A DNA stretch of 43,562 bases, from NCBI GenBank assembly GCA_002269645.1, contig NIVC01004514.1, positions 1 through 43,562 on the forward strand, written 5' to 3'. Positions 4,838 through 43,562 of the stretch are shown piece after piece (within the stretch, counting starts at the first letter, position 1; every line of letters begins with the position of its first letter). A model generated the notes under the pieces. That model did not search any database. It was not told the DNA's origin and saw only the letters and a list, made by a program, of their open reading frames with translations. Source of the DNA: Macrostomum lignano (Eukaryota). A program made the position numbers and the translations under genes.

Positions 4838-5704
<867 letters not shown>

Positions 5705-6850: not shown

Positions 6851-9800
6851 ATGGCTGGTCGAGGCCGGCCTATCCAGCCAGCAGTCGCTGATTTTAATGA
6901 CGAATGGGCTGCTGAACCAGCATCAGGAGATGATATCAATCAGCAAGGCACTAGCGACTGGAGTAGTGAACATTTAAATATCGATGTTGGCGGTAATCGT
7001 GTTCAAGGATCCAGTAGCCACAGAAACCAAGGACATCTTAGTGGCAATCAAGCGAGCTACTTCGATTACGGCGGAAATGAAGAGTCCCGAGATGGCTTTG
7101 GTAGCGGTCGGGGCCGTGGTGGCTTTGGAGCCCGTGGAGGCTTTGGTAGCGACAGAAACGAAGAACCTCGTGGAGGCTTTGATGGCGGTCGGGGCCGTGG
7201 TGGCTTTGGAGCCCGTGGAGGCTTTGGTAGCGACAGAAACGAAGAACCTCGTGGAGGTTTTGATGGCGGTCGGGGCCGTGGTAGCTTTGGAGCCCGTGGA
7301 GGCTTTGGTAGCGACAGAAACGAAGAACCTCGTGGAGGCTTTGATGGCGGCCGGGGCCGTGGTGGCTTTGGAGCCCGTGGAGGCTTTGGTAGCGACAGAA
7401 ACGAAGAACCTCGTGGAGGTTTTGATGGCGGTCGGGGCCGTGGTAGCTTTGGAGCCCGTGGAGGCTTTGGTAGCGACAGAAACGAAGAACCTCGTGGAGG
7501 CTTTGATGGCGGTCGGGGCCGTGGTGGCTTTGGAGCCCGTGGAGGCTTTGATAGCGACAGAAACGAAGAACCCCGAGGCGGCTTTGGTAGCGGTCGAGCC
7601 CGTGGAGGCTTTGGAGCCCGTGGAGGCTTTGATGGCGGTCGGGGCCGTGGAGGCTTTGGAGCCCGTGGAGGCTTTGGTAACGACAGAAACGAAGAACCCC
7701 ATGGAGGCTTTGATGGCGGTCGGGGCCGTGGTAGCTTTGGAGCCCGTGGAGGCTTTGGTAACGACAGAAACGAAGAACCCCGAGGCGGCTTTGGTAGCGG
7801 TCGAGGCCGTGGTGGCTTCGGCAGTGACCGTAGTCAAAGAGGTGGGTTCGGTGGCAATCAAGAGAGCGACTTCGATTACGGCGGAAATGAAGAGCCTCGA
7901 GGTGGCTTCGGTAGCGGTCGAGCCCGTGGTGGCTTTGAAGCTCGTAGAGGCTTTGATAGCGGTAGAGGCCGTGGTGGCTTCGGCAGTGACCGTGACCAAA
8001 GAGGTGGGTTCAGTGGTAATCAAGAGAGCGATTTCCAATTTGACAGAAACGCAGAACCTCGAGGAGGCTTTGGTGGTAGCCGAGGCCTTGGTCAAAGAAG
8101 TGGTTTTGGTGGCAATCAAGAAAGCGACTTTGATGGAGGCAGAAACGAGCGATCCCGAGGAGGCTTCGGCGGTCGTGGTCGGGGATCGAGAGACATAGAT
8201 GGCTTTAGATCGTTAAGTAGAGAAGATCAAAGTGGTGAAGAGTTCGAAAGGAGCAATCGAGGCTTCGGAAGTGGATTCGAAAGTAGAGACTTTTATCGTC
8301 GGGATAATGCAAATAACAATGGTGATAGCGTCTGCTTCAGGTGTCAGCAACCAGGACACTTTGCGCGAGAATGCACTAATTCTGGCGCGATTGCTTGTTT
8401 TAACTGCGGTGAGTCTGGCCACTTTGCCGCAGAATGTCCGAACACTCAACGCACTAGCAGAGATGGTCCATCAGCTGCTCATATCCCGGAGACGTCGGAA
8501 CTTGATGAGATATACAACCAAACTGTCCATGCCGGCATTAACTTTGACAACTACGAAAAAATTGATGTCGAAGTTTCGGGTGTTGACCGACCCGGCTACT
8601 TGCAATCATTTGATGAAATTGGCTTGTCCCCTGTCCTAATGGACAATATTTCTAAGAAGTTCAAGTATACAAAGCTAACACCCGTGCAGAGATACGCTAT
8701 TCCGATTGTACTTAAAGGTCGCGATTTAATGGCCTGTGCACAGACAGGGTCCGGGAAGACGGCGGCTTTTATACTGCCTATGGCAAAGTTAATCACTGAG
8801 ATAGGCGATATCAGCACTGGTGGAGGTTATACTACTTATCCGGTTGCTCTTGTCTTGGTACCGACCAGAGAACTCTGCAACCAGACGTTTGAATTCGGCC
8901 TGTAAGTTCATTGCTATTCTTGAATCAAATATATTCCATTAGTCTAGTGTTACTTTTAATCTTGTTTTTAGTTTCTGCTAGATAAAAGCAAGCATTTGTT
9001 CTCACATCACTTACAGAGGCTTTCTAGCTGGAACGGGCGTTCGAATTCAACGAATTTATGGCGGACCCAAGACGGACTACCTGCGTAATGAGCTGGCCAA
9101 TGGCTGCCACATTCTGGTGGCCACTCCCGGCCGGCTGAAGGACTTCGCCGAGAGGAACATTGTCAGTCTGAACAAGACCCGCTTCCTTGTGCTTGACGAG
9201 GCCGACCAGATGCTTGACAGGGGCTTCATGGACTCGGTGACTTGGACGCTGGACCAGATGCCATCCAATAGGCAGATTCTGATGTTCTCGGCTACCTTCC
9301 CTGGTCCGATTCAAGCTCTGGCTCAGCAGTACCTGCAGAACTATTTGTACCTGACTGTGGGTCAGGTGGGCGCAGCCAATCCCGACGTGACTCAGGAAGT
9401 TCGCGAGGTGCAGCAGGACGACAAGCAGGCCGCTCTGGAGTCAGTCATCGACGAGTGGCATTCGGATCCGGCTCGAAAGAGCGACCGGATTCTCATCTTC
9501 GTGGAGACAAAGCGACAGGCGGACTTTGTCGGACTGGCTCTGACGCAGAAGAAGCAGCTGCTCTGTACCACAATTCACGGAGACCGGCTCCAAAGCGAGC
9601 GCGAGACTGCTATCAGGGATTTCAAGAGGGGCAAGAAGCCGGTTATGGTCGCCACAAACGTGTCGGCTCGCGGCGTTGACATCAACGGAATCGAGCTGGT
9701 GATCAACATGGACCTGCCGAGCGACTTTCAAATGTACGTGCACCGCATTGGTCGCACAGGTCGCTGCGGCAACACAGGCAAGTCGATCTCGTTTTACGAC

Positions 9801-10076
9801 CACGGACGCGACTCGGCCCTGGCCCTCCTGTTGCGCCAGAATCTGGAGAAGTCCGGTCAGTCCGTGCCAGACTGGCTCGACGTTTACGCGGACCAGTCCG
9901 GCGGCGGCGACATGGGCGGCGTCGGTGGCTTCGTAGGCGGCAGCAATCGCGACATGAGGCGCGGCGTCGCCAGAGACCGGTTTCGCGAGCAGCCCGACGA
10001 GGGCGACTTCGCCGAGAGCGCGTTCCGTCCTGCCCCAGCCGCTGCTCAGCTATCCAACGACGATCCATGGGATTAA
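6851..10076 (+). CDS. vasa: Vasa/DDX4-type DEAD-box RNA helicase, copy 1, intact, ~1036 aa; join(6851..8901,9017..10076); alternative in-frame ATG at 6836
   Basis: N-terminal acidic-Trp motif (NDEW), long RGG/FG region and 2 CCHC knuckles (from 8333 and 8396). GINFDNY flank, Q motif, [30 protein letters not shown] and HRIGRTGR. Vasa-type C-terminus DDPWD. One phase-2 GT-AG intron (8902-9016) joins the two ORFs in frame. Confidence 0.93.
7085..8160 (+). repeat. Coding tandem repeat in vasa copy 1: 81-nt/27-aa unit (EEPRGGFDGGRGRGGFGARGGFGSDRN), then degenerate copies
   Basis: GAAGAACC recurs at 7160, 7241, 7322, 7403, 7484 and 7565 (exact 81-nt spacing). Confidence 0.95.
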
Positions 10077-11940
10077 TGATTAAATCTGTTTTTTTTGTAT
10101 AATCCCGCTACTGCACATCAGTAATTGGTAGTATTTTTGGTTAATTCGATTGTTTGATTAAGATTTCTTCCCCCGACTTGGCTTGACAAGATTTGGAATC
10201 GTAGATTAAAGACATCTACTGCTGCATATAGTGATCTTAATTTAAACATATGCCCAACGCTATTTTTTAGTCTAATGCGAACTTCGGACGGTTTTTTATC
10301 TGGAGAGTACAGCACATGCTTTTGCGGCAGTAAAGAACCTATTGCGTGAAGCGACCACCTATAAAATGCGTTATAGAAATCATGTATATACTAGCGTTTA
10401 GTGAGAATGAAGCTCCCGTCCTTTTGCCCCTCCCGCTGCTCCTCTACTCCTGCTCCGCCCTCCATCCAGAGTTATTATCCAACACTACTTAGACTCAAAA
10501 GACTGACAAGGAAACTCCAATATACTAATCAAACGAAGAGACCATCTAGAGACTTCTGGATCGAAGTGCACCAATATAGATAAGTAGCCCCCTTTTTATT
10601 TCACTGAATTGCTTTAAAAACATTGCATGTTTATTGTCTATTCGAAACTGCAACCATCAGGAATTAGAAATAAACATCCGTGTTGAGGGTTAAAAATCGA
10701 GAGAAACCTACTGAACCTTCGACTTGATTTATTGATTAGAAGCGCATAGACGGTGGGATTGTAGTACACCTTAATTTCGTAATTTAAATTGGTGCCAACT
10801 CGAGGCGGGTGTTAAGTAAAGCAAAGCAATCGCATCGCAATGTAATAATACTCGTATATCTTCGTTTCGTCCAATAATTTATATTCGTAACTTTATATCA
10901 GCTGAATTTCATCGCCTTAGCTCAATGGTGAGTCCAATAAATGCTGAATCATAGCTCGAACTGTTACTGGCTATGCTTTAGAGTGTGCCTAGTAAGCAGG
11001 GAGCTGTGCAAACTTGTGATTGGGCGGTAAAGGCTCAAAGTCAAATTTGGTGTCCTGCCTCCGTTCTTGCTACAAGAGACATCTTCAAAGAGAGAAACGA
11101 AAGAATAAGAAAAACAAAACATTTGATGCTCTAAGGTACAGATAATTTCTGTAGATTTTTTTAGTCACTAAAAGTTTGGCCACCGAATGTTTTAGCTTTT
11201 TTGCCACTAATTGGTCAAACGCTAAACTATATTCATTATACGCTACACCTACATTGCTTATTTTATTATTTGTTTTATTATTTTCACTATGTTATATGTG
11301 CATGCTATACTGAACTCTAATTGATCGGTTTCATTCACTAGTTATGTGCTTTTAGTGACAAACATTATCTTAAATGATTAAATCTATCCTAAATTTTTTG
11401 ATTAAATCTTATTAGTTGCTACGCAAAGCAAAAACTCAGGTCTTTCATAATTTCGCTTCGGTTACGGGTCGTTTTTTTCTGTTTTTATTTGGGTTTTTAG
11501 TACACGTTATTATTGTTTTTTTGTCATTTTTGCTTTTTGACGCTCAGAACGAACCTTTATTATTTTTGTTCGTGCTCAGAGGTCAGCAGAATCGGCATAA
11601 CTGCTAGCCTTCTTGATTTGCGACAGTGCCCAAGACCCCTTGCGAAGTAACTAGCCTGACTCTATTGACATATGTATCTGCTGATTAAATCTGCATCTAA
11701 TCCTAATATTTTGACGCGATAACATATTTGCATTGTGGTTCACAATGCAAAGAATCAATCATAATCTTATCTATGTTGTATACTAAGTAAAATATAAAGT
11801 TAATTAAGATTGCCTTGCTAATTTTACTGTCATGTTCTTCTTGTGTAAATTTCATTAAACTAAAGTCAGCTTTGCAGCCAAGATGCTCAGTAAAATTAGT
11901 ATTAAGATTCCCTATTATGCCTCCAGATTCTAAAATGGCA

Positions 11941-12319
11941 AGATGGGCCACTCAGGCATATATACTTAGTAAAACAGCTCTACTTTCAGTTCAGTAGCAA
12001 AGAAGAATATATAAGCTATTTTTTAGAAATAAAGGCAGCTGAAATGACTTTGATAAGTTCAGAAGCCCAAAGCTTGCAGGCGTAAACAGCTAGCTAATTG
12101 GTTCAGCAGTAATGTACATTAGCCAGTCCACTAAAATGTACATGGCAGCTTTAGGCTGGAATTCCGAGAAAGGCAATAAAAATTGGGTGGCGGAGCGGTG
12201 GTAGTGTGGAAGGGCACGGTTGGAGGGTTCAATTTGGGTGTTAAGAGCCAATAAATGAGCCTTGGCTTTAAAAATACATAAAAATGCTTCTGTTTAATTT
12301 ACTACTGAGCTGAAAGTAG
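11941..12319. mobile_element. MITE-like element, copy A (right end decayed); inverted relative to copy B at 26509-26926
   Basis: Begins with GATGGGCCACT. Has subterminal inverted repeats (11980-12000 versus 12299-12319). The interior matches the reverse complement of 26540-26926 over ~350 bp. Confidence 0.65.
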
Positions 12320-12829
12320 CATTTCTGCTAAAGGCTGTGCTATCGTCCGCACAAACAATAATAAGAATGGAATTAAGATCCAAAGGGGAGGAAAATGAAC
12401 TAAGATTGTCTTTGCTCACCAGTCAAACTTTTAGGCCATAGACAGTCCAGGTGGGAAACCATTGTCTTAGCAAAATCTAAAATTCTGCCAAACGTGCCAA
12501 TTAGATCATTTATAACTGTTCTCGATCGTCCTTTTGCCACAGTTGGCACAGCTATGACACAATTATGCTAATCAGCATATTACTGTGCTATGGAAACAGT
12601 TGCGAAACAGTTATGACTGTGCCACAATTGTGCAATAAGTGTCGATAGAGCCTTTTTTGCTACTAATCGACAATTATTTTTCCATTTGTTTCTTTACATC
12701 TGTAAGAGAATTAAATGTACTTGGCTAATTGTCGTAATATAAATTTTCGCTGCTCAATTATTGACTTTTGCTATGATAAAAATATTTGTTCATGTGCTGT
12801 TTTCAAAATCACCAAAGGTTGCATTAAAA

Positions 12830-15800
12830 ATGGCTGGCCGAGGATTTTTGCCCAAAGGCGACGTTGAAGACGAATGGTCGTCGGGAAATCTGAATAATGA
12901 CTTCAAGAAGATGACCTTTGGAGCTTCTAACGGCAGCAACGGATTCGGTGGCGCTTCGAACTATCAAAGTGGAGACACGGCTAATGGAGAAGGGGGTTTC
13001 GGCAGTGGCCGCAGTGGGTTTGGTGGAGGTCGCGGTGGCTTTGGCAGCGGTGCGCAAAATGGAGACAGAGGAGGTTCTGAAGGTCGTGGTGGTTTCGGTG
13101 GCGGGCGCGGTGGCTTTGGAAGCCGGAATGAAGACGCTCAGAACGATGATAGCGTCGGCTTTGGAAGCCGTGGAGGGTTCGGGGGTGGTCGAGGTGGAGG
13201 CCGTGGCGGCTCCTCTGCTTGCTTCAAGTGCAACGAGAGCGGTCATATGGCACGAGACTGCCCGAATGCTGATTCTCAAGAAAGACGTGGCGGCTTTGGT
13301 GGTGGAGGCCGTGGCGGCTCCTCTGCTTGCTTCAAGTGCAACGAAAGTGGCCATATGGCACGAGACTGCCCAAATGCTGATTCTCAAGAAAGACGTGGCG
13401 GCTTTGGTGGTGGAGGCCGTGGCGGCTCCTCTGCTTGCTTCAAGTGCAACGAAAGTGGCCATATGGCACGAGACTGCCCAAATGCTGAAGGACAAGGTTC
13501 TAGTGGTGGATTTGGTAGTCGTGGAGGTGGCGGATTCGGCCGTGGAGGAGGCCGTGGCGGCTTTGGAGCCTCCGCTAATGATGGCGCTGAAGGTAGCGGA
13601 GGTAGCTTCGGCAGCCGCGGTGGTGGTGGCTTCGGCAGTCGCGGAGGAGGCCGAGGTGGCTTTGGAGCCTCCGATGATGATGGCGCTGATGGTGGCGGAG
13701 GTGGCTTCGGCAGCCGCGGTGGTGGCTTTGGCAGTCGCGGTGGTGGCTTTGGCAGTCGTGGAGGAGGCCGAGGCGGTTTGGAGCCTCCGCTGATGATGGC
13801 GCGGATGGTGGCGGAGGTGGCTTCGGCAGCCGCGGTGGTGGCTTCGGCAGCCGTGGAGGAGGCCGAGGTGGCTTCGGAGCCTCCGCTGATGATGGCGCTG
13901 ATGGTGGCGGAGGTGGCTTCGGCAGCCGCGGTGGTGGCTTTGGCAGCCGCGGAGGAGGCCGAGGTGGCTTCGGAGCCTCTGCTGATGATGGCGCTGAAGG
14001 TGGCGGAGGTGGCTTCGGCAGCCGCGGTGGTGGCTTTGGCAGCCGCGGAGGAGGCCGAGGTGGCTTTGGAGCCTCCGCTGATGATGGCGCGGATGGTGGC
14101 GGAGGTGGCTTCGGCAGCCGCGGTGGTGGCTTTGGCAGCCGCGGAGGAGGCCGAGGTGGCTTTGGAGCCTCCGCTGATGATGGCGCTGGAGGCGGCGGTG
14201 GTGGTTCTGTCTGCTACAAGTGCAACCAGAGTGGCCATTTTGCCCGCGAGTGTCCAAACGCTGAAGCTGGAGGCGGCGGTGGCGGTTCTGTCTGCTACAA
14301 GTGCAACCAAAGCGGCCATTTTGCTCGCGAATGTCCGAACGCGGACGCACGTGCCTGCTTTCGCTGTAAGGAGACGGGCCACATCTCTGCCGACTGCCCG
14401 AATGTCGCCGCCGGTGATGCCCCCGGTGCCTCGACTGCTCACGTGCCTGAGGAGTCTCAGCTAGACGAGATTTATAGCCGGACCGTCCACACGGGCATCA
14501 ATTTCGACAAGTACGAGCAAATCAACGTAGAGGTGTCGGGCACCGACAAGCCGGGCTATCTGACCAGCTTCGATGCCATCGGGCTGCCCAGCGTGATGCT
14601 GGATAACATTCTCCGCAAGTACAACTACAACAAGCTCACGCCGGTGCAGAAGTACGGCATCCCCATCATCCTCAAGGGAAGAGATCTGATGGCCTGCGCC
14701 CAGACGGGCTCTGGCAAGACTGCGGCCTTTTTGCTGCCTCTGGCAAAGATGATCGCCGAGCTGGACACCAACGATTCTACTGTTGCTCAGTACACCACCT
14801 ACCCGGTCGCTCTTATACTGACTCCTACCCGAGAGCTGTGCAATCAAATTTATGATTTCGCTAGGTAAGTTCTTTGTCAGTAAATAATTTCACTATTGAT
14901 TAATCTTTAATAGCTCAAACACAAGGTAATAAGTTGAGTTGAATTGAATTTAGTTCGTGCAGTTTTAATCCATAATCATGCCTTTAACTAAATGAAGCTA
15001 AATATTTTTACAGACATGGCTGTATGTATTGTATATAACAATTTATTTCAAATACTAGTGCATGCCAGTGTCAGTAATTTAGCTTTTCCAGCTCGTTCTA
15101 TCCAATGTTGCTTTCAGCAAATTTTTGTACCCATTCAAAAACGTCATGCGCTGTCATACCACAAGTGGAATTGTGTCAAGTGTCTGCGATCGGAGTCTGA
15201 ACTGCAGCACCTCGTTAATGTTGGTGGCGGCACTCTTAATGTTATGGCGAATGGTGATCGCTATACTATCGATACGCACATTTCCTCTGCTGCATCTCTG
15301 TGTGAGGATATTCACATCTACTTTTCCAAGAGCTCAAATCGGACAAAGAAGTTCGAAGCCCTTCACATGGCGTTGAAGGTGGCCACGCACACATTCCTTT
15401 AAGAATGTGCAACGTGCTGGTTGGAGCTACTGCCCTACCTAGTGCGACTCGAGAAGCAGTGAATTATACTTCGCAGCATACTTTGTAGAGCAGCTTAGTC
15501 GAATACAATGATGCGGCTGCATCCAACGCTCGAATCCATGGCAGGGCATCAGGCAAGCTCTTTAGGACACGTCGACTCGATTAGCAATTAGTTTTCCATA
15601 TCCAGCGTCTTTTACAGAAGTACAAGATATAAAGTTTCAGCTGGAAAACACTGCTTGTTCACGACATCCATAAGCAGACTGTTAGACTGTTAGAGTACTG
15701 TAATCGCTGAGAATCATTTCTACCGAATGGACTTCCAGAATCCAGATTGCTACTATCCAATTTCCGTTGGCAAAAATCGGCGTCGGTTCGGACACCAAAT

Positions 15801-18800
15801 GGCTGTTGGTTGAGGATCCGAGAGCCAGGCACAAACCCACCTGCAGAACCTACCTGCCGTTTCCAAGGGCCTCTATGTAAATCCGATAGATAATGAATAT
15901 TTGTGCAGGTCCGTCTATGGTTAATCTAACAAAGTCTTTTTCTCAGCCGTCCCGGTTTTTTCGATGTTCCAGAGCGAGGTTCATCATCAGTTGATGATTC
16001 TCCTTCTTTAAAGCGGTTGTACCACTTTTACGCAGCCCGCTGAAACATGGTTTTGTCTCTGTACGCTATGTACTTGTGCAGCAGGAATTCCGACGCAGGA
16101 TTACGTCGATGGAGTAAAGACTCCGTTTCCATTATTTACGAGTCCGTCAGGTGATTTGCTGAATATTTGTTGTTTTAGAGTTCTCTGCACAGCGCTAGGA
16201 GCATTAAAACTTTCTAAAACTCGAGGATTTGACCATAGCCTATGTATTGGTCTTATCAAAGCTCAAAGCAGCAGCCCCATACATGTATATGGTCGATACT
16301 TGATTGCACGAAGACTTAGACTTCGTGGACTTAGAAGAATCGTAGACTTACGATTGCACCCTCGGAGCTGGACCAGCTGACAATGAAGGTACACCTATTC
16401 ACCTATTCAACATGAGGTCCACTTCCTCTGCTGGAACCACGGATGCGAGGCGAATTAAGGATTTGGTAAGGAATGACACTCGAGCGTAGTCCATTGAGTT
16501 CCCTTCTTTGGATCGCCTAGAACTGTTTTATGATAGCGCTGACGGTGAACGTTTCATTGGAAAGTAAGTGCCATGACATCCATGCCCAGAAAAAGCGCGA
16601 ACGTTCGTAGCTCGTGTATACAACTGGAGTGAACTCGCATCTAGCGAGGAGCTAAGTCTGAGGTCTTTGGTGTTATATTGCCACCCGATCGGGTATCTGG
16701 TAGACAAATTTCAAACTGCACGTTTCCTTCTTTTACGATCCATAGAGTCCTGACCACGCTCACTGTGACTTAGTCTTATATCACTCGTTACCATGCATCA
16801 CCCACACCATTTGGCTGCAGCTCTGGTGACTGTCAACTTTAAATGGATTCACCAACTGTTCTCAGAGTTCCGTCAAACATTTTAACAGGACGGGCCGCTT
16901 TCACATTAAAATTCACTTTGTCAGAACTTACTTATCATCCAGGTATTGTTTTATAATTAGAGATTCCATCTCCACGTGTTGTTCTATAATTGAAGATCCC
17001 ATCACCCTGACTCCTGATCTCCAAGTAGGTATTATTCCGTACGAGTAATTCGATCCAATATAGTTTTAAAAAAACTGAAAAAAATAGCTTAATATTCAAG
17101 TCCAAATACTGTCAATCCATTAAGCTTGAAAAGCGTTTATTCTTATGATGTGTAAAAGGTTCGTTCCAGTAGTACGAGGGCTGATCAAAAAGTTCTGCAA
17201 GTGACCTCAACTCAGTGTTACAGCAGCCGAGGCGTCTAATCAGTGTCACATTCCCTCAAGGTACTTTCCACCACCATCTATGCACCGTCGCATGCTTGTG
17301 CACCATATCTGAAAGCAGTCATGGTACTCCGAGGTTGGTATACCCTGTAGAGCTGAATGTACCGCTTGGGCAAGGTCTTGTATGCGTTAAAACGGCCTCC
17401 CAGAAATGACGGATTTGATCCTCAGGAACAGCCAAAAGTCACAGGGTGCTAGGTCTGGAGAGTAGGGTGGATGGGGCAGCAGCCGGACCCCCTGCTGTTC
17501 CAGGTATGCCATGGTTGAGGCCGCTCTCTGCGGTGCCGCATTGTCATGGTGCAGCAGGAGTCGAGGTCCATGTCTGGTTCGCGCACGTTCCTGCCGCTCC
17601 TGCAGCACGCCTGGCAGAACAGTGTCTGTGTAGTACCTGGCAGTCAATGTGGCACCCGTTGGAAGGATGTTCACCGATAAAACACCCTGAAAGTTGAAAA
17701 AATGGTAAACATCCGCTTCCGACTGCGGAATCCGGTCTTCAGCACCTCAGGCCTTGGCTCATCTTCTGCCAGCCAGACCATGTTAGACTGCTTATCCTTC
17801 ATGGTAAAGAAGGAGATCCAACATTCGTCTCTGTGATGACATTCGACAGTCGTCGTGGGCCGTGGGGCTCAAACATTTGCAGCCACAAGCAACAGATGCG
17901 CACCCTCTCTGCTTGCTGCTCCGGAGTGAGAACATGGGGTACCCACCCAGCGCAGGTCTTTGTGCGGCCCAGTTGCTCATGCATGATCCATAGCTGACAC
18001 CAAGCTCATAGGCAAGGAATCTCAGCGTAATGCTCCGATCCTCACGAATTATTGCATTGGCACGGGCCACGACATCTTCGGTCACGGATGTCCGGGGTCG
18101 GCCAGACCACGATTCATCGTTGAAGCCGTCCCGGCCTTCCGGGAAATGGCGCACCCAGCGGGCAACCGTGTCAAATTATTGAAGCAGAGTCAGCTAAAAT
18201 ATTCACTAGATCAGTATGAATCTCAGTCGCTCTGCAGCCAGATTGCATGCGCATAAAGATATAGAAGCGAACACTGTCTTTTGATAGTGGAAAATATATG
18301 GCTGTGAAATTTGACTGGCGCAAAGTTTTTGGCTTTTGCCGATTCTATATCTAAAAGCTATAACAAGAGGTTGCAGAACTTTTTGATCACCCCTCGTATC
18401 AACTAAAACAATGCAGTTTATTCAGGCAGTAATTAATAGCATTCAAGGTGATAATGACAATAAAGTCAGGCAGTAATTAAAATTAGTTTCCTATATAGCA
18501 AGTATTTTTTCAAATCGGAACTATAGCGTTGTGTTTTATGTAAGAATTTTCACCTCTCCTTCTGTCAGGGGATTTCTGGCTGGCACAAATATTCACGCCA
18601 AGCGCGTCTACGGCGGTCCCAAGACCGACTACTTGCGCGCGGAACTGGCCAACGGCTGCCACATTCTGGTGGCCACTCCCGGCCGGCTGAAGGACTTCGC
18701 CGAGAGGAACATTGTCAGTCTGAACAAGACCCGCTTCCTTGTGCTTGACGAGGCCGACCAGATGCTTGACAGGGGCTTCCTGGACTCGGTGACCTGGACG

Positions 18801-19616
18801 CTGGAGCAGATGCCTTCTGACAGGCAGATTGTGATGTTCTCGGCCACGTTCCCTAATCAGATTCAAGCTCTGGCTCAGCAGTACCTGCAGAACTATTTGT
18901 ACCTGACTGTGGGTCAGGTGGGCGCAGCCAATCCCGACGTGACTCAGGAAGTTCGCGAGGTGCAGCAGGACGACAAGCAGGCCGCTCTGGAGTCAGTCAT
19001 CGACGAGTGGCATTCGGATCCGGCTCGAAAGAGCGACCGGATTCTCATCTTCGTGGAGACAAAGCGACAGGCGGACTTTGTCGGACTGGCTCTGACGCAG
19101 AAGAAGCAGCTGCCCTGCACCACAATTCACGGAGACCGACAGCAGCGCGAGCGCGAGACTGCTATCAGGGATTTCAAGAGGGGCAAGAATCCGATTATGG
19201 TCGCCACAAACGTGTCCGCTCGCGGCGTCGACATCAACGGAATCGAGCTGGTGATCAACATGGACCTGCCGAGCGAATTCGACATGTACGTGCACCGCAT
19301 TGGTCGCACAGGTCGCTGCGGCAACACAGGCAAGTCGATCTCGTTTTACGACCACGGACGCGACTCGGCCCTGGCCCTTCTGTTGCGCCAGAATCTGGAG
19401 AAGTCCGGTCAGTCCGTGCCAGACTGGCTCGACGTTTACGCGGACCAGTCCTGCGGCGGCGACGGCGGCTTTGTAGGCGGCAGCAATCGCGACATGAGGC
19501 GCGGCGTCGCCAGAGACCGGTTCCGCGAGCAGCCCGACGAGGGCGACTTCGCCGAGAGCGCGTTCCGTCCTGCCCCAGCCGCTGCTCCGGCAGCCGAAGA
19601 AGAGGCCTGGGATTGA
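12830..19616 (+). CDS. vasa: Vasa/DDX4-type helicase, copy 2; join(12830..14864,18569..19616); one 1-nt deletion at ~13777-13779 (assembly error or pseudogenising); ~1027 aa if corrected
   Basis: MAGRG...EDEW start, 3+3 CCHC knuckles, RGG repeats, all helicase motifs intact, ends EEEAWD. The frame after 13780 is open through the knuckles into the helicase. The phase-2 intron (14865-18568, 3704 bp) is at the same position as in copies 1 and 3. Confidence 0.8.
13500..14195 (+). repeat. Coding RGG/FG tandem repeat of vasa copy 2 ([32 protein letters not shown]-like units)
   Basis: Recurrent GGAGCCTCCGCTGATGATGGCGC...GGCTTCGGCAGCCGCGGTGGT blocks. Confidence 0.9.
15170..16260 (+). pseudogene. Probable decayed hAT-family transposase fragment inside the vasa copy 2 intron
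   Basis: Translation of 15200-15470 gives [14 protein letters not shown]...[16 protein letters not shown]...[23 protein letters not shown]. This resembles the hAT pattern (C.LH..HN ... YF..S..R..F ... H..L....TRWL.....L.R...QW), with stops and R>C substitutions. No TIRs found. The right boundary is uncertain. Confidence 0.5.
17175..18396 (-). mobile_element. Full-length (1222 bp) decayed mariner (Tc1/mariner, DD34D) transposon inside the vasa copy 2 intron
   Basis: 26-bp TIRs CGAGGGCTGATCAAAAAGTTCTGCAA (17175-17200) and TTGCAGAACTTTTTGATCACCCCTCG (18371-18396) with 1 mismatch, and TA on both sides (17173-74, 18397-98). Minus-strand fragments: HTH ([22 protein letters not shown]), WVPHVL, a frameshifted IT(G)DE, and HHDNA-34 aa-D with [10 protein letters not shown]. 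At least three frameshifts. Confidence 0.93.
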
Positions 19617-21219
19617 CGGCCGCGCTGCTGGACCTGTGTCTGAAAGTTTTCATGCAGAAACAATTTTTTTACTGCACGGTGTTCGTACTTGTTAGACTTC
19701 TTGTTGCTATTTTCGTGTTTATTTCTCTTCCCATTCACTGCGGGTCAGATCTCGGGTAATCCGCTGTCTTGGTGCTCGATCTGCGTTAAAGCATTTTTAT
19801 TAAAACGCTTTGTGTCGTCTCGGCAAATTTATTATTTTTATAAATTTAGTATTTTTGCTATCTTATTTTTCCTAAAAAAATCGGCCCAGTCATTTTTAAT
19901 AGTCCTAATTTACATTTGCAATGGCCCGATTTGTTTTCAAAACAGTGCGTGAGCAGTGCGTGCTCAGGGTCCTCCGGTGGTTCTATTCTAAATAAACCTA
20001 TGTGTAATAAAATCGATTGAGCTCCTGTGCACTCTGCTGTTTAGCGCTATCTTGCTGCAGATGCTCCTGTCCTCATGATTTTCACAGCTGAGTGCGACAG
20101 CGACGGAATCTCGATGTTGCAATATTTATTTACAAGCTGCATTTTTTATACACCTGGTGCTAACTGGTGCTAATCTATATATCGCGTCTTTACTACTTTT
20201 GTTTAAGCCAAACTAACTATTATTATTATTATATATTCTACTTTTTAATATCGTTTCAAAGCCTAGTTTATAGAGTAGCTTTATCACTACTAGACTTAAG
20301 GTTAGCTTACCCAGTACCCCTGCCCACATTGAGCCGCGTCTCATGATTCGATTCAATGGTACAGTTTGTTCATTTTTAGTAGCATAACACGCTGTCTGCA
20401 CACTGTATTGCTGTGCTGTCTGCACACTATTGTGCTATCTGTATTACTGTGCTATGAAATCGAATCGAACCAAGGGGCAAATATGCTTCCTTAATTAGAT
20501 TCAAATATAAGACTGCCTCCGATATCTTGCAATTCGTAAGGCCACAGCAATAAAGCCCCGTTCACCAATTATTTTTATTTCGATTCATTCGTGTTGCAGT
20601 TGATTAAAGAAACGCCTTTGTGAAATTATCACTGTGCTCTGCGGTCCGCTTCGCAAGATGCATTTAATAAATCGGCTTTCGATCCTTTGGTTATTTTTAT
20701 TTTGTTCAAATTTGGCTGCTCTTTTGCTTTTGTTTTTTTCTTATTTGATTTAGGGAAACTTGTCCATGCGTTGGTCTAAATAGCTGTTTCCAACCTCAAA
20801 AACCTTACTGATAGTGATAAATAGGGCAAGGTCATCAAAAGGAGTCCATACTCACTCGGACAGTAAGTTAAAGCAATTAACATCCCGGAAAATACGAGCG
20901 TACAATTCTTAATGTTAATGAGCCTTAGCATGCAACACGCTCTCAACACTCCTTGGTTTTAATCACAGATACTAGAATAACTATCAGCATAGCTAGTAGA
21001 TGTCACTCGCAATTAAAGCTGTGAAAAGTACAGCGTCGACTCCTTTTCTGTAGTTTGTCTGCGCCGAGTCACTTAAATTTAATGTGGCATCTAAATTTGC
21101 TTTCCTTGCTCGGCGTTTGCAACCTCTTGAGAATATAGGGTTAATTAAGAAATAACACGCATTTAACTTTATGTACACAAGTGAACACAACTTCACAAGA
21201 CGGACGAAACTCAGCCATT

Positions 21220-21630
21220 GGGGCAGGCCCAATCTAGCTCAGCCAATGAGAGAGCAGTAAGGAGAGAGGTCAAAGTCAGAGCCTAGGGTTGGGGCAGGCC
21301 CAATCTAGCTCAGCCAATGAGAGAGCAGTAAGGAGAGAGGCCAAAGTCAGAGCCTAGGGTTGGGGCAGGCCCAATCTAGCTCAGCCAATGAGAGAGCAGT
21401 AAGGAGAGAGGTCAAAGTCAGCCTAGGGTTGGGGCAGGCCTAATCTAGCTCAGCCAATGAGAGAGCAGTAAGGAGAGAGGTCAAAGTCAGAGCCTAGGGT
21501 TGGGGCAGGCCCAATCTAGCTCAGCCAATGAGAGAGCAGGAAGGAGAGAGGTCAAAGTCAGAGTCTAGGGTTGGGGCAGGCCCAATCTAGTTCAACCAGT
21601 GAGAGTAGTAAGGAGAGAGGCCAAAGTCAG
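21220..21630. repeat. Minisatellite, 71-bp unit, ~5.8 copies, between vasa copies 2 and 3
   Basis: GGGGCAGGCCCAATCTAGCTCAGCCAATGAGAGAGCAGTAAGGAGAGAGGTCAAAGTCAGAGCCTAGGGTT units start at 21220, 21291, 21362, 21431, 21502 and 21573. Confidence 0.95.
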
Positions 21631-23075
21631 GCGCAAGCGGGCAAGAGAAAAGCCTAAACAGTTAACTGTTATTGGCCTGACTGTGGCTGGGGCGCCACCC
21701 CTTTTTCTTTTTCTCTATGCACATGCACTGGATTTGGGGTTTTACTTTTAAGTTTTCCTTCGTCTTAAATTAATTTTTAAAAAAATTAGAATCTGTGGTT
21801 TTCTGGTGTCGCTAAACAAGATAACAGAATAAACAGGATAAATACGTTACTCAAATGGGTCTTGCTTGTTGAAAAGGTCGAGACAATGTTGCAGCTTTAA
21901 AAACTTAAAATATCTTGTATTATTAAAAAACAAAATGCTGGTTTTATAATATTATTGTGAAGGCAAAACGCTAGTTTTGCTACTGAAGTAAGAGTAGTTG
22001 AGCAATTTTTTTACGATTGACGTTTCTGCTCGTAGTTAGTCTAGTATCTGTGGTTTAAATATTACTTTTTGCGTTATACGCTTGTAGGGAAATCAAAATT
22101 AAATAATAAATGCAGTAATATCACTGAGTAGCGAAAGCTCAGTAAGATATCTATTATGCAACTTCATTCAATTTCATACATACATACGTACATACATACA
22201 CGCAGTACAAGTACGGGAAACTAAACCATTTGGTAGCAAGTAGATATGATGTTGCTCATAGACAGGCAGACGGAAAAAAGGCAAACAAGTTGATAATTAG
22301 GCCTAGACATCAGCACAAATAAGAATGCCAGCAGCAACGGCTCTTGTATTGGGTAAAACAGAGAGTTCTCGCGGTTTGTGAAGCTTTCTATGAAATGAAG
22401 TACATGTAATGGTACTGTAGCACTGTAGCTCAAACTTGAATTTGGGTTGCTCTGCGTCGGTCTAAGGCATTTATATACCTCTGCACACAAAACCTAGAAG
22501 CCTCTAGAAATTTCTGTAGGCTTAACTTTCCAAATCGCGAAAATTTTCTATTTTACCCACTAGAAATCATGCTTAAACACCGACTTCCATGTAGTAAAGA
22601 TCAGAATTATCAAATTGGATACTTTTTATAAAACTCGCTTGCCTTTTGGCAAGACCATAATCTACTACTGCCAAATTGCAATCCTCAATTTGGCTCAAAA
22701 AATAAGTGTATAGAATCTAAGGTTAAATAGATATGAAACGAGCTGTCTATGGCCGAAGGTCTATTAACCGGCTGCAAATTTGTGAAGTTTATTTACTAGA
22801 AAACAAATTAGTCTATGGTAGTGGGTAGGGCTTCGCCCCCACACCCCGTCCCTCACTCTCGGGGTGTAGCTTGAGCAAAAATGTCTATAGTACGAGTACA
22901 GTAATCATTGATGCCCCTGCCCAATCTGCATGTAGAACCAAGGCGCCCTCTGATTTTCTATTAACACCTATTAACGCATGGGTACATTTAGTGTTCACCC
23001 TTTTTAAAGAAACTTATAGAATTTGTCACCGATCGCATTAAAACTTATGCTTATGGCAATCTAAAACAGCAGCGT

Positions 23076-26074
23076 ATGGCTGGCAAGAGATTCCTTATTA
23101 AAGACGCCAACGAAGACGAATGGGCGCCATTGACTGATGATTTTTCAAAGCTGACCCTTGGAGCCGACCGTAATGTAGCATCGACTGGTCGCGGTGGTCG
23201 CTTTGGCAGCCGCGGAGGAGGCCGTGGCGGCTTCGGAGCCTCCGCTGATGATGGCACTGAAGGTGGCGGAGGTGGCTTCGGCAGCCGCGGTGATGGCGGA
23301 TTCGGCAGTCGTAGAGGAGGCCGTGGCGGCTTCGGAGCCTCCGATGATGATGGCGCTGATGGTGGCGGAGGTGGCTTCGGCAGCCGCGGTGATGGCGGAT
23401 TCGGCAGCGTAGAGGAGGCCGTGGCGGCTTCGGAGCCTCCGATGATGATGGCGCTGATGGTGGCGGAGGTGGCTTCGGCAGCCGCGGTGATGGCGGATTC
23501 GGCAGTCGTAGAGGAGGCCGTGGCGGCTTCGGAGCCCATGCTGATGATGGCACTGAAGGTGGCGGAGGTGGCTTCGGCAGCCGCGGTGATGGCGGATTCG
23601 GCAGTCGTAGAGGAGGCCGTGGCGGCTTCGGAGCCCATGCTGATGATGGCACTGAAGGTGGCGGAGGTGGCTTCGGCAGCCGCGGTGGTGGTGGTGGCTT
23701 CAGCAGCCGCGGTGGTGGTGGTGGCTTCAGCAGCCGCGGTGGTGGTGGTGGCTTCAGCAGCCGCGGTGGTGGTGGCTTCTGCAGTCGTGGAGGAGGTCGA
23801 GGTGGCTTTGGAGCCTTCGTTGATGATGGCACTGATGGTGGTGGAGGTGGCTTCGGCAGTCGCGGTGGTGGCTTTGGCAGCCGCGGAGGAGGCCGTGGCG
23901 GCTTCGGAGCCTCCGCTGATGATGGCGCTGAAGGTGGCGGAGGTGGCTTCGGCAGCCGCGGTGATGGCGAATTCGGCAGTCGTAGAGGAGGCCGTGGCGG
24001 CTTCGGAGCCCATGCTGATGATGGCACTGAAGGTGGCGGAGATGGCTTCGGCAGCCGCGGTGGTGGTGGCTTCTGCAGTCGTGGAGGAGTTCGAGGTGGC
24101 TTTGGAGCCTCCGTTGATGATGGCGCTGATGGTGGCGGAGGTGGCTTCGGCAGCCGCGGTGGTGGCTTTGGCAGCCGCGGAGGAGGCCGAGGTGGCTTCG
24201 GAGCCTCCGCTGATGATGGCGCTGGAGGCGGCGGTGGCGGTTCTGTCTGCTACAAGTGCAAACAAAGCGGCCATTTTGCTCGCGAATGTCCGAACGCGGA
24301 CGCATGTGCCTGCTTTCGCTGTAAGGAGACGGGCCACATCTCTGCCGACTGCCCGAATGTCGCCGCCGGTGATACTTCCGGTGCCTCGACTGCTCACGTG
24401 CCTGAGGAGTCTCAGCTAGACGAGATTTATAGCCGGACCGTCCACACGGGCATCAATTTCGACAAGTACGAGCAAATCAACGTAGAGGTGTCGGGCACCG
24501 ACAAGCCGGGCTATCTGACCAGCTTCGATGCCATCGGGCTGCCCAGCGTGATGCTGGATAACATTCTCCGCAAGTACAACTACAACAAGCTCACGCCGGT
24601 GCAGAAGTACGGCATCCCCATCATCCTCAAGGGAAGAGATCTGATGGCCTGCGCCCAGACGGGCTCTGGCAAGACTGCGGCCTTTTTGCTGCCTCTGGCA
24701 AAGATGATCGCCGAGCTGGACACCAACGATTCTACTGTTGCTCAGTACACCACCTACCCGGTCGCTCTTATACTGACTCCTACCCGAGAGCTGTGCAATC
24801 AAATTTATGATTTCGCTAGGTAAGCTTTTCAACTTTCTGTTCGTCCTGACAGAGACCAAGTGCCAGGGTAAATGAGTAAGTGTCAAACCGGCATTTTAGG
24901 GTCAATCGATATAAACGGTACTAAATGCAGAATTAAAAGTACTCGTACGTAATTATTAATAGGTAAAATTCGTGCTTTTTGGGATTGTATTTAAAGCGAT
25001 GCTATAGCGATAGCTCTTCGTCTCATTCCTTCTGTCAGGGGATTTCTGGCTGGCACCAATATTCGCGTCAAGCGCGTCTACGGCGGTCCCAAGACCGACT
25101 ACTTGCGCGCGGAACTGGCCAACGGCTGCCACATTCTGGTGGCCACTCCCGGCCGGCTGAAAGACTTCGCCGAGAGGAACATTGTCAGTCTGAGCAAGAC
25201 CCGCTTCCTTGTGCTTGACGAGGCCGACCAGATGCTTGACAGGGGCTTCCTGGACTCGGTGACTTGGACGCTGGAGCAGATGCCTTCTGACAGGCAGATT
25301 GTGATGTTCTCGGCTACCTTCCCTGGTCCGATTCAAGCTTTGGCTCAGCAGTACCTGCAGAACTATTTGTACCTGACTGTGGGTCAGGTGGGCGCAGCCA
25401 ATCCCGACGTGACTCAGGAAGTTCGCGAGGTGCAGCAGGACGACAAGCAGGCCGCTCTGATTGAAATTCTCAAGCATTGGCGCAGCGACCCCAGCCAGGC
25501 GGACGATCGCATTCTGATCTTTGTTGAGTCAAAGCGCAAAGCCGACTATGTCGGCCTCATGCTATCTGACGGCGGCTTCCCGTGCACCACAATTCACGGG
25601 GACCGGCTGCAGCGCGAAAGAGAAATCTCCCTGCGCTCGTTCCAGCGTGGCAGGCTGCCGATTATGGTCGCCACAAACGTGTCCGCTCGCGGCGTCGACA
25701 TCAACGGAATCGAGCTGGTGATCAACATGGACCTGCCGAATGACTTCGACATGTACGTGCATCGCATTGGTCGCACAGGTCGCTGTGGCAACCCGGGAAA
25801 GTCGATCTCGTTTTACGACCACAGACGCGACTCGGCCCTCGCTCTCAAGTTGCGCCAGAATCTGGAGAAGTCCGGTCAGTCCGTGCCAGACTGGCTCGAC
25901 GTTTACGCGGACCAGTCCGGCGGCGGCGGCTTCGTAGGCGGCAATCGCGACATGAGGCGCGGCGTCGCCAGAGACCGGTTTCGCGAGCAGCCCGACGAGG
26001 GCGACTTCGCCGAGAGGATGTTCCGTGCCAACCCGGTGGCTACACAGCCGGTCATCGCTGACGATTGGGATTGA
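23076..26074 (+). CDS. vasa: Vasa/DDX4-type helicase, copy 3; join(23076..24819,25039..26074); one 1-nt deletion at ~23408; ~926 aa if corrected
   Basis: MAGKR...EDEW start preceded by an acceptor-like AACAG. RGG repeats, 2 CCHC knuckles (24248-24355), all helicase motifs, ends ADDWD. The frame from 23411 is open to the donor at 24820. 219-bp phase-2 intron. AATAAA at 26099-26104. Confidence 0.8.
23195..24230 (+). repeat. Coding RGG/FG tandem repeat of vasa copy 3
   Basis: Same unit family as in copy 2, with variants [18 protein letters not shown] and a run of FSSRGGGGG. Confidence 0.9.
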
Positions 26075-26508: not shown

Positions 26509-26926
26509 GATGGGCCACTCAGCACATTTGCTTGTAAGCTACTTTCAGTTCAGTAGCAAGTTAAACAGAAGCATTTTAATACATTTTTAAAGCCTAAAAT
26601 TGGCTCAATTGGCTCTTACCCCCCAAGCTTAAACCCTCCAGCCGCGCCTTTCCACACTACCCCCGCCCCGTCCCAGCCTAAATTTTATTGCCTTTCTCGG
26701 AATTCCAGCCTAAAGCTGCCATGTACATTTCAGTGGACTGGCTAATGTACATTACTGCTGAACCAATTAGCAAGTTGTTTACGCCTGCAAGCTTTGGGCT
26801 TCTGAACTTATCAAAGTTATTTCAGCTGCCTTTATTTCTAAAAAAATAGCTTATATATTCTTCTTTGCTACTGAACTGAAAGTAGAAAGTGTTTTTACTA
26901 AGCATACATGCTTTTAGTGACCCATC
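26509..26926. mobile_element. MITE-like element, copy B, 418 bp, TA-flanked
   Basis: TA-GATGGGCCACT...AGTGACCCATC-TA ends (1 mismatch). Perfect 21-bp subterminal inverted repeat (26539-26559 and 26865-26885). No coding capacity. A second copy lies at 11941-12319. Confidence 0.72.
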
Positions 26927-27220
26927 TAGTCATTGTAGAATCTGTGGGTGTACCATGTCAGCTGTGCGCCGAACAGTAAACCATTTATTTATAGTGTATG
27001 CTAAATATAAGTTTTTAACACAACACTTCACGCCATTCTTAGGTGGGAGGATCGATCGGTTTCACCATTACTTGCCTGTCCCAGCTGCTGTTGCTGCATA
27101 AATTAATTAAGGAGTTGTTTGGCATCAACAATTCCTGGAATAGTGTCCAAGTTAAAAGAATAGTTGAAAAAAAAGTGTTTTGCTTTGCTTGTATGCAATT
27201 CAGTCCGGCAAATGGCGGTA

Positions 27221-27912
27221 AAATGTCACTGGCAGTTAAATGTTACTGGCAGTCAAATGTCACTGGCAGTCAAATGACACTGGCAGTCAAATGTCACTGG
27301 CAGTCAAATGTCACAGGCAGTCAAATTGTCACTGGCAGTCAAATTGTCACTGGCAGTCAAATGTCACTGGCAGTCAACTTGTCACTGGCAGTCAAATTGT
27401 CACTGGCAGTCAAATGTCACTGGCAGTCAACTTGTCACTGGCAGTCAAATGACACTGGCAGTCAACTTGTCACTGGCAGTCAATTGTCACTGGCAGTCAA
27501 TTGTCACTGGCAGTCAAATTTCACTGGCAGTCAAATGTCACTGGCAGTCAAATGTCACTGACGGTCAAAATGTCACTGGCAATCAAATGTCACTCGGAGT
27601 CAAATGACACTGGCAGTCAAATGTCACTGACGGTCAAAATGTCACTGGCAGTCAAATGTCACTGGCAGTCAACTTGTCACTGGCAGTCAAATGACACTGG
27701 CAGTCAACTTGTCACTGGCAGTCAATTGTCACTGGCAGTCAATTGTCACTGGCAGTCAAATTTCACTGGCAGTCAAATGTCACTGGCAGTCAAATGTCAC
27801 TGACGGTCAAAATGTCACTGGCAGTCAAATGTCAATCGGAGTCAAATGACACTGGCAGTCAAATGTCACTGACGGTCAAAATGTCACTGGCAGTCAAATG
27901 TCACTGGCAGTC
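27221..27912. repeat. Minisatellite, ~17-bp unit CAAATGTCACTGGCAGT, ~40 copies
   Basis: Directly visible. Includes a 242-bp higher-order duplication (27501 versus 27743). Confidence 0.95.
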
Positions 27913-28202
27913 ATTACTGCAAATGACGGCTTCCCCTCGATACAAGCAAGCAAAACTTGCATTGCTCATTTTCATTAATCCCTTCATAGTGCATGCATTA
28001 CGTAGCCCAATTGAAACAAAGTGCACACCGATCTGACAAAATAAGAAGTCAGTAATCACAAGAGGGCGTATCAGGGCTGCTTTGTGTTGCATGTAGACGC
28101 AGTGGAAATCAGTATTATAAGGAACTTTCCTAGTAGCAAATTCAATAATTATTGATTGATGCGACATGGCCAGTTGGAATTGCATACTGTACTATCTAGA
28201 CA

Positions 28203-42880
<14,678 letters not shown>

Positions 42881-42949
42881 CTGAGCAGATTTTGGACAAA
42901 GAGTTGGCTTGTCACTACGTGTAGAATTTGCTGTTGGGCTCAGAGGAGC

Positions 42950-43562
42950 TACAGAGAAGGCGCCAGATGCAGAGGTGGCGCCAGATGCAGAGGAGGCGCC
43001 AGATGCAGAGGAGGCGCCAGATACAGAGGAGGCGCCAGATGCAGAGGAGGCGCCAGATGCAGAGGAGGCGCCAGATGCAGAGGAGGCGCCAGATGCAGAG
43101 GAGGCGCCAGATGCAGAGGAGGCGCCAGGAGGCGCCAGATACAGAGGAGGCGCCAGATGCAGAGGAGGCGCCAGATGCAGAGGAGGCGCCAGATGCAGAG
43201 GAGGCGCCATGTGCAGAGGAGGCGCCAGATGCAGAGGAGGCGCCAGATGCAGAGATGGCGCGGTCGCCAAGCTACAGTGGAGGCGCCAGATGCAGAGGAG
43301 ACGCCAAGCTACAGAGAGGGCGCCAGATGCAGAGGAGGCGCCATGTGCAGAGGAGGCGCCAGATGCAGAGGAGGCGCCAGATACAGAGGAGGCGCCAGAT
43401 GCAGAGGAGGCGCCAGATGCAGAGGAGGCGCCAGATGCAGAGGAGGCGCCAGATGCAGAGGAGGCGCCAATGCAGAGGAGGCGCCAGATACAGAGGAGGC
43501 GCCAGATGCAGAGGAGGCGCCAGATGCAGAGGAGGCGCCATGTGCAGAGGAGGCGCCAGATG
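42950..43562. repeat. Minisatellite, 18-bp unit GCAGAGGAGGCGCCAGAT, >30 copies, running off the window end (probably NMDAR intron)
   Basis: Directly visible. Confidence 0.96.

Follow-up and report, generated by a model that had tools for sequence, protein, structure and literature searches.

A probable old tandem array of three vasa/DDX4-type helicase genes in Macrostomum lignano, partly overwritten by gene conversion

The flatworm Macrostomum lignano carries three vasa/DDX4-type genes (v1, v2 and v3, or copies 1 to 3) in tandem on contig NIVC01004514.1 of assembly GCA_002269645.1 (Mlig_3_7), whose full 43,562 bp are referred to below as the window. The genes lie head-to-tail on the forward strand, from the ATG of copy 1 at 6851 to the stop codon of copy 3 at 26074. 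We consider it probable that they form a genuine old array of three functional Vasa/DDX4-type helicase genes, partly overwritten by non-allelic gene conversion, with the published germline marker macvasa as its third member. Gene models were derived from an open reading frame (ORF) listing, three-frame translation and inspection of splice junctions. The first gene, v1 (exon 1 at 6851-8901, exon 2 at 9017-10076), has an intact ORF for 1036 amino acids (aa), while v2 (12830-14864 and 18569-19616) and v3 (23076-24819 and 25039-26074) encode 1027 and 926 aa after repair of one base each. Every gene has a single coding GT..AG intron of 115 nucleotides (nt) at 8902-9016 in v1, 3704 nt at 14865-18568 in v2 and 219 nt at 24820-25038 in v3, in phase 2 and at the same codon, between ...DF(A/G)(R/L) and GFLAG. 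Both the head-to-tail order and the shared intron position proposed in the original prediction are thereby confirmed. An origin of the copies as processed retrocopies, which the single coding intron of each gene might suggest, was rejected, since this spliceosomal intron is kept at the same position and phase in all three.

The proteins are readily recognised as DEAD-box helicases. Pfam DEAD (E 1e-44 to 1e-45) and Helicase_C (E ~1e-28) domains are found in each, and the full motif set is legible in their alignment, comprising Q, I (AQTGSGKT), Ia (PTREL), GG, Ib (TPGRL), II (DEAD), III (SAT), IV, V (ARGVD) and VI (HRIGRTGR). In v1, exon 1 encodes the disordered N-terminus, two CCHC knuckles and the start of RecA1 with the Q motif and motifs I and Ia, and exon 2 encodes motifs Ib, II and III, RecA2 with motifs IV, V and VI, and the tail. 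Pfam zf-CCHC matches number two in v1, six in v2 and two in v3, in agreement with the predicted 2, 3+3 and 2, and each N-terminus holds 28-33 RGG motifs. All three proteins start with MAG(R/K)...(D/E)DEW and end with DDPWD (v1), EEEAWD (v2) or ADDWD (v3), so that the anticipated acidic-tryptophan motifs are indeed present at both ends. These motifs are typical of Vasa proteins in general: among the vasa matches, 109 of 114 carry the C-terminal motif and 56 of 112 the N-terminal motif. Knuckle counts in the vasa matches of other animals range from 0 to 10.

The best protein matches are M. lignano proteins of the same contig, followed by vasa/DDX4 proteins from many phyla at 44-49% identity. Among solved structures, Bombyx Vasa (399 bits) and Drosophila Vasa (366 bits) score above DDX3X (351 bits). 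In a neighbour-joining (NJ) tree of 208 RecA1 columns, v1-v3 fall within the vasa/DDX4 clade (90% bootstrap), apart from DDX3X-labelled proteins. Together these comparisons place the three genes closer to Vasa/DDX4 than to PL10/DDX3/Belle, by a moderate margin. The same tree unites v1-v3 with a fourth M. lignano gene, P0025 (Mlig019643), in one clade with 100% bootstrap. This distant vasa-type gene (Mlig019643.g4), located outside the window on a 284,862-bp contig, encodes a protein that is 43% identical, has three knuckles and ends in EDDWS; a published supplement lists it as trans-spliced and as 'Neoblast, stringent'.

The reality of the array can be judged against a second contig, NIVC01000646.1 (495 kb), of which a part was fetched. 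It is collinear with 11685-35106 of the window at 88-96% identity and repeats the v2-type to v3-type gene order in the same orientation. The core coding sequences (CDS) of these two genes, v2b and v3b, are 98-99% identical in nucleotides to their counterparts in the window, and the encoded cores are 97.5-99% identical in protein. Mlig_3_7 contains three homeologous subgenomes with a single-nucleotide divergence of ~2%, and 36% of its length lies in chimeric scaffolds (PMC10733133). The second contig, to judge from the alignment, behaves as a homeologue. By contrast, v1, v2 and v3 are best read as old paralogues and not as stitched alleles, because synonymous divergence between them is saturated over whole segments and their introns and flanks cannot be aligned, as against ~2% for homeologues. 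A blastn comparison (word 7, E<=1e-3) of the upstream regions, introns and 3' flanks of v1, v2 and v3 found no mutual similarity, with one exception described next; the absence of upstream similarity noted in the original prediction is thus borne out.

The exception is a pair of ~400-nt repeats at 11924-12320 and 26538-26944, which are inverted, 88% identical and flank the block formed by v2 and v3. Both arms lie within regions that align to the homeologous contig, which makes the pair probably older than the genome duplication; two mobile-element copies or the trace of an old rearrangement could account for it.

The helicase core of these genes is a mosaic. Five cores (v1, v2, v3, v2b and v3b) were codon-aligned and nucleotide identity was followed in 30-codon windows; this sample holds no DNA of a v1 homeologue, and no outgroup Macrostomum sequence turned up among the protein matches. 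Amino acid identity of the cores is 85.5% for v1-v2, 79.2% for v1-v3 and 89.1% for v2-v3, and nucleotide identity alternates along the gene between tracts of 98-100% and tracts of 54-72%. Over core aa 1-150, the exon-1 part with the Q motif and motifs I and Ia, v2 and v3 are 99-100% identical in nucleotides, and v1 is 54-70% identical to either. Around TPGRL, DEAD and SAT (core aa 181-270) all three genes share 86-100%. At the start of RecA2 (core aa 271-360) v1 and v2 are 91-100% identical, with v3 at 66-72% to both, and from motifs V and VI into the C-terminal extension (core aa 361-480) all three again share 89-99%. The prediction of a near-shared helicase core is therefore not borne out, as the core is far from uniform.

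Synonymous divergence (dS) draws the same boundaries. In segment A (core aa 1-160) it is 0.009 between v2 and v3 and 0.09 within each homeologue pair, and v1 is saturated against v2 and v3; in segment C (core aa 283-360) it is 1.1-1.4 between v3 and v1 or v2, and 0.086 between v1 and v2. Exon 2 of v3 (25039-26074) thus includes a v3-specific, anciently diverged RecA2 segment, and the homogenisation is patchy, with an anciently diverged segment remaining in v1 and another in v3.

Gene conversion between v2 and v3 appears to account for the youngest of these tracts. Their exon-1 helicase parts are 99-100% identical in nucleotides within the contig, as opposed to 98% to their own homeologues, and 14437-14864 in v2 is identical to 24392-24819 in v3, as would be expected of a recent conversion tract. 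In spliced coordinates the identical run measures 446 nt and reaches 18 nt into exon 2 despite the unrelated introns, and the tracts therefore seem to end where homology ends. Site patterns among v2, v3, v2b and v3b tell the same story: core nt 1-580 contain 12 locus-specific and 2 paralogue-specific sites, and the rest of the core 1 and 109 (Fisher P = 7e-14), so that 12 of the 13 sites shared within a locus and different between loci fall in the first 579 core nt. Because these 12 within-locus substitutions, common to v2 and v3, distinguish the two contigs, v2-v3 conversion has gone on in each subgenome since the genome was recently duplicated. Between v1 and v2 there is an older exchange. 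Of the 80 sites in the RecA2 segment that are paralogue-specific, v1 has the v2 state at 77, and exon 2 of v2 (18569-19616), v3-like over its 5' ~150 nt, is v1-like from ~18654 to ~19587, where identical runs of up to 254 nt are shared with v1 9102-10047.

Of the hallmarks of concerted evolution, an abrupt divergence mosaic that includes synonymous sites can be recognised across the core, and likeness within a locus, for v2 and v3 only. The idea of a homogenised enzyme in the original prediction is thus supported and gains a mechanism, with the reservation that it applies in patches. Conversion templated by cDNA, which identity across the exon junction might bring to mind, was considered and is not favoured, since a junction-spanning tract would erase the intron, which is kept in every copy.

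Upstream of the core, the N-termini are built from repeats and knuckles. In v1 an array at 7074-7961 consists of an 81-nt (27-aa) unit, GFDGGRGRGGFGARGGFGSDRNEEPRG, rich in arginine and acidic residues, in ~6.6 clean copies plus degenerate ones; two CCHC knuckles follow at 8333-8437 (aa 495-529). In v2 a first knuckle module of 108-nt units (13193-13488, three CCHC; four in the homeologue) precedes an RGG / GASADDG array of 96-99-nt units (13505-14204) and a second knuckle module (14212-14397, three CCHC). In v3 an RGG / GA(S/H)ADDG array at 23190-24240, with ~10 units of 99 nt and a 27-nt sub-array (23657-23775), is followed by two knuckles at 24248-24352 (three in the homeologue v3b). The fraction of charged residues in the N-termini is 0.29 in v1, 0.20 in v2 and 0.23 in v3. 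The original prediction of three different N-termini is upheld as regards repeat units, knuckle numbers and charge, but the 96/99-nt arrays of v2 and v3 and their adjacent knuckles are homologous (82-88% identity); the locus would accordingly be described by two repeat designs, not three, plus a module private to v2. In the fetched part of NIVC01000646.1 (1124-3219 and 10007-11718), v2b has 4+3 knuckles against 3+3 in v2 and v3b has three against two in v3, and the N-terminal repeat series of v3b differs from that of v3. With homeologues already different, the arrays appear to gain and lose units and knuckles quickly. Long antisense or off-frame ORFs over the arrays (6974-8119, 12824-14350, 13384-14442 and 23051-24397, all on the reverse strand) could pass for overlapping genes; they were rejected as stop-free by-products, because the arrays are GC-rich and codon-periodic.

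Taken together, these observations suggest the following history. Each gene combines a glycine- and arginine-rich disordered N-terminus of gene-specific repeats and CCHC knuckles with a full core and an acidic-tryptophan tail. The duplications would be ancient, as saturated synonymous sites in some segments and unalignable introns and flanks suggest, and non-allelic conversion between coding exons would repeatedly have overwritten parts of the core. Such conversion has probably made v2 and v3 alike across the RecA1 half in the time after the recent whole-genome duplication, left v1 and v2 sharing the RecA2 half, and kept the central DEAD/SAT and motif V/VI segments common to all three. Its tracts would stop at heterologous introns and flanks, with the N-terminal repeats and knuckles turning over in parallel. 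All three proteins may act as Vasa does elsewhere, as ATP-dependent RNA clamps or unwinders in nuage or chromatoid bodies that support the amplification of PIWI-interacting RNAs (piRNAs), with overlapping and partly redundant activity.

The third gene connects the array to a well-used marker. By sequence, v3 is the macvasa of Pfister et al. 2007/2008 (UniProt A9J0E5, 929 aa; A9J0E2, 860 aa), which since its cloning has served as a marker of germline and stem cells, with expression in testis, ovary, eggs and stem cells (PMC1828727). The N-terminal 439 aa of the A9J0E5 cDNA align without gaps to repaired v3, with all repeats in the same order and three substitutions. macvasa has been described as one gene with two isoforms, whose RNA interference (RNAi) abolishes piRNAs and gives no stem-cell phenotype (PMC4604429). 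The two published cDNAs carry two (A9J0E5) and three (A9J0E2) knuckles, and their cores are yet another patchwork of v1-, v2- and v3-type residues. Because they differ from each other in repeats and knuckles as v3 differs from v3b, the 'isoforms' more likely represent separate genes, perhaps with one in the third subgenome, than splice variants.

The published reagents can be mapped onto the array. The in situ probe has a forward primer that fits v2 and v3 and a reverse primer that fits v3-type genes only, at 26012; 32% of the 21-mers of the probe also occur in v1 and 46% in v2. Of the quantitative PCR (qPCR) primers of Zhou et al., the forward one finds a perfect match in v1 only, the reverse one in v2-type genes and v3b only. 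The reagents were designed on the copy-3 type, and since 32-46% of their 21-mers recur in the other copies, the paralogues are not told apart by the expression and RNAi data at hand; what has been published on macvasa from in situ, antibody, qPCR and RNAi work is probably a family-wide readout. The missing macvasa RNAi phenotype is likewise not assignable to any one gene. Paralogue-unique stretches are nevertheless available at CDS nt 1-2156 of v1, 1-795 of v2 and 2146-2383 of v3, and in the untranslated regions. The gene identifiers Mlig005423, Mlig027829 and Mlig023312 were found neither in searchable full texts nor in the supplements of Wudarski 2017 and Grudniewska 2018.

One could go beyond overlapping activity and see in the array, with the original prediction, a sub-functionalised system, in which Vasa roles are divided among neoblasts, testis and ovary or egg, among granule types or among piRNA steps, with N-termini and promoters sorting the proteins and conversion keeping the engine interchangeable. 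Such a division is possible but rather unlikely on present evidence. The upstream regions are unrelated, the N-termini differ in repeat unit, charge density and knuckle number, purifying selection seems to act on every copy, and the neoblast class of the distant Mlig019643.g4 indicates that some partitioning is present in the wider vasa family. Against it, testis, ovary, eggs and stem cells are all stained together by the probably cross-reacting macvasa reagents (PMC1828727, PMC4604429), and even homeologues differ in their numbers of repeats and knuckles, which neutral turnover would explain as well as adaptive tuning. A more specific version, in our estimate unlikely, would make the locus a natural swap system for intrinsically disordered regions (IDRs), where ongoing, exon-limited conversion keeps the engine interchangeable and fast N-terminal turnover together with unrelated promoters lends each copy its own condensate or RNA-targeting behaviour, partitioning the work among neoblast chromatoid bodies and male and female nuage. 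If this were true, redundancy of the copies and the fourth, neoblast-enriched gene would explain why macvasa RNAi removes piRNAs and leaves stem cells and gonads intact.

Whether all three genes of the array are functional depends on how two frameshifts are read. The copies had been taken for three full-length paralogues, which does not hold for the assembly as it stands, as the ORFs of v2 and v3 are broken there and the lengths of 1027 and 926 aa are reached only after single-base repair. In v2 one nucleotide is deleted after 13776 (GGCGG-TTTGG, compared with GGTGGCTTTGG in sister units), and in v3 one after 23407 (GGCAG-CGTAGAGG, compared with GGCAGTCGTAGAGG). Both deletions lie inside RGG repeat units and break the frame before the helicase; the repeat alignment shows the extra base in all sister units, and neither site is in a homopolymer. 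Mlig_3_7 was assembled with Canu from early PacBio reads, and its authors took intact ORFs as a measure of quality. Most likely, both deletions are consensus errors of this PacBio-based assembly, because A9J0E5 is in frame, the exon-1 ORF is intact in both homeologues (v2b and v3b) and the ratio of nonsynonymous to synonymous divergence (dN/dS) between homeologues is low, at 0.04 for v2 and 0.15 for v3.

The frameshifts might instead be real, with v2 and v3 of this contig as young pseudogenes decaying after polyploidisation and only v1 here and the intact homeologues functional. This would agree with a neopolyploid genome of three subgenomes and high redundancy, and with the pattern of one single-base deletion per gene outside any homopolymer. 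We nonetheless regard it as quite unlikely: the A9J0E5 cDNA has the exact repeat order and knuckle number of v3 in frame, dN/dS between homeologues is low, both deletions sit in repeat arrays, where consensus polishing is weakest, and the assembly paper itself uses broken ORFs as a gauge of assembly quality.

The same repeats have affected the annotation. All three genes are present in the transcript-based GenBank annotation, where the models comprise 894 aa for v1, 866 aa for v2 (P0001) and 774 aa for v3 (P0003) and are thus too short by about 140, 161 and 152 aa, respectively. Whole blocks of repeat units are skipped, most likely because the annotation was made from short-read transcripts. 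The blocks skipped in v2 and v3 include both deletion sites, so that the GenBank proteins of these genes jump over the repeat blocks that hold the probable assembly errors. The annotated v1 product and a 1055-aa v2 homeologue were absent from the protein-search matches, where they would be expected among the top scorers.

With regard to the origin of v2, its core, v3-like in the 5' part and v1-like in the 3' part, brings to mind a single unequal crossover of an ancestral v1-v3 pair (anti-Lepore), for which the predicted order, v1, then v3 5' joined to v1 3', then v3, is the one seen. Such an event should have given v2 an upstream region like that of v3 and a downstream region like that of v1, and no such similarity was found. 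Moreover, v2 has a private N-terminal module of three 108-nt knuckle units and a private intron, and the genome duplication came after the array but before the v2-v3 tract, which means that conversion has been acting in any case. As the sole origin of v2 the crossover was rejected as the main explanation, the intergenic DNA not being duplicated, and we hold it to be very unlikely. That homeologous or allelic copies of one gene were merely joined in series by the assembler, a concern in a genome of three subgenomes with many chimeric scaffolds, is hardly credible and the worry about stitched haplotypes or homeologues largely answered, given whole segments with saturated synonymous divergence and unrelated introns and flanks (where true homeologues are collinear and differ by ~2%), an independent contig with the same v2 to v3 arrangement, and a window free of Ns and gaps.

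Several points weigh against a functional tandem array of three genes and should be set beside the evidence for it. Copies v2 and v3 are frameshifted as assembled, and no cDNA spans the v2 site. Transcript support consists of short reads that multi-map across identical tracts, and the GenBank models omit whole repeat blocks. The adjacency of v1 and v2 is seen on this contig alone, the homeologous stretch starting just downstream of the place where v1 would be expected, in an assembly with more than a third of its length (36%) in chimeric scaffolds (PMC10733133). Protein searches with the v1-specific half returned no M. lignano match, as did the query with the neighbouring Ran GTPase; a v1-type protein from an older assembly, A0A1I8JLJ9, differs slightly from v1, and a second v1-type gene therefore exists somewhere in the genome. 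The NJ tree is based on the RecA1 domain only, with partial DDX3 sequences as outgroups.

The surroundings of the genes contain further features. A Ran GTPase gene of three exons (4838-5704, forward strand) lies 1.1 kb upstream of v1; it encodes 215 aa from its ATG and is annotated on the contig as a 221-aa partial product. Within the v2 intron, a segment at ~16600-18482 measures ~1.9 kb here and ~0.5 kb on the homeologous contig, and an ORF at 17792-18154 (reverse strand, 120 aa) gives a sub-threshold match to HTH_32, a transposase-type domain; the segment probably represents a transposon that inserted after the genome duplication. Between v2 and v3 lies a 71-nt satellite (21218-21630) with 5.9 copies and 94% matches, which the homeologous contig carries as well. 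Past the last vasa gene (26.5-43.5 kb) the contig consists largely of separate tandem-repeat arrays, at 27213-27913, 28387-29986, 31939-35106, 36318-36941, 37186-37848, 38279-38987, 41228-42632 and 42947-43562, and the same arrays occur on the homeologous contig; the 3.2-kb array at 31939-35106 shows a strong strand skew (AT skew about -0.43). Exon-sized ORFs of an ionotropic glutamate receptor, with tandem repeats between them, are found at 37913-41095 on the reverse strand (Lig_chan E 1e-14 and a weak Lig_chan-Glu_bd match). Rfam and tRNA scans of the window returned no RNA genes. The annotated CDS starts are not preceded by AG, and the check for trans-splice acceptors was uninformative.

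Expansion of vasa in M. lignano has been noticed before. That vasa is usually single-copy, the premise of the original prediction, is fair in general, but a survey of flatworm small-RNA genes (Fontenla et al. 2021) already reported an amplification to four genes after clustering (PMC8191739). This number fits v1, v2, v3 and the distant Mlig019643 type; the survey offers a count and a tree, without genomic arrangement, copy-wise comparison of domains and repeats, or conversion analysis. Independent vasa duplications are known from ctenophores (five paralogues in Mnemiopsis), sponges (Sycon vasaA/B) and cnidarians (vas1/vas2) (PMC5381599), for none of which did we find a description of a tandem cluster with exon-limited concerted evolution and array turnover. 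In spider major ampullate silk genes, clustered paralogues are reported to combine regions that are homogenised with internal repeats that diversify fast (PMC9779670), in a protein class and a biology different from those of the vasa trio.

A further parallel is offered by GLH-1 to GLH-4 of C. elegans, Vasa-like P-granule helicases of one design, with varying CCHC knuckles and glycine-rich/FG repeats and partly redundant functions. The GLH genes are dispersed and not tandem, their repeats are FGG rather than RGG/acidic, and their expansion is independent of that in M. lignano; we know of no report of their homogenisation by conversion. The macvasa literature was not found to describe copies 1 and 2, the tandem order or the conversion mosaic. 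More widely, no description of the tandem order, the conversion mosaic or the turnover of repeats and knuckles was found in the searchable literature, and these features appear to have gone undescribed.

The locus is a lineage-specific expansion of vasa by ordinary mechanisms (tandem duplication, gene conversion and repeat slippage) in a genome known for its redundancy. It offers a compact case of concerted evolution that halts at heterologous introns beside fast-changing low-complexity arrays, in a helicase that forms condensates, and could serve as a naturally occurring series in which the N-terminus varies and the core stays nearly constant. M. lignano is a transgenic flatworm model for stem cells, the germline and piRNAs, with macvasa as one of its two classic markers; what has been handled as a single gene is represented at this locus by at least three tandem genes per subgenome.

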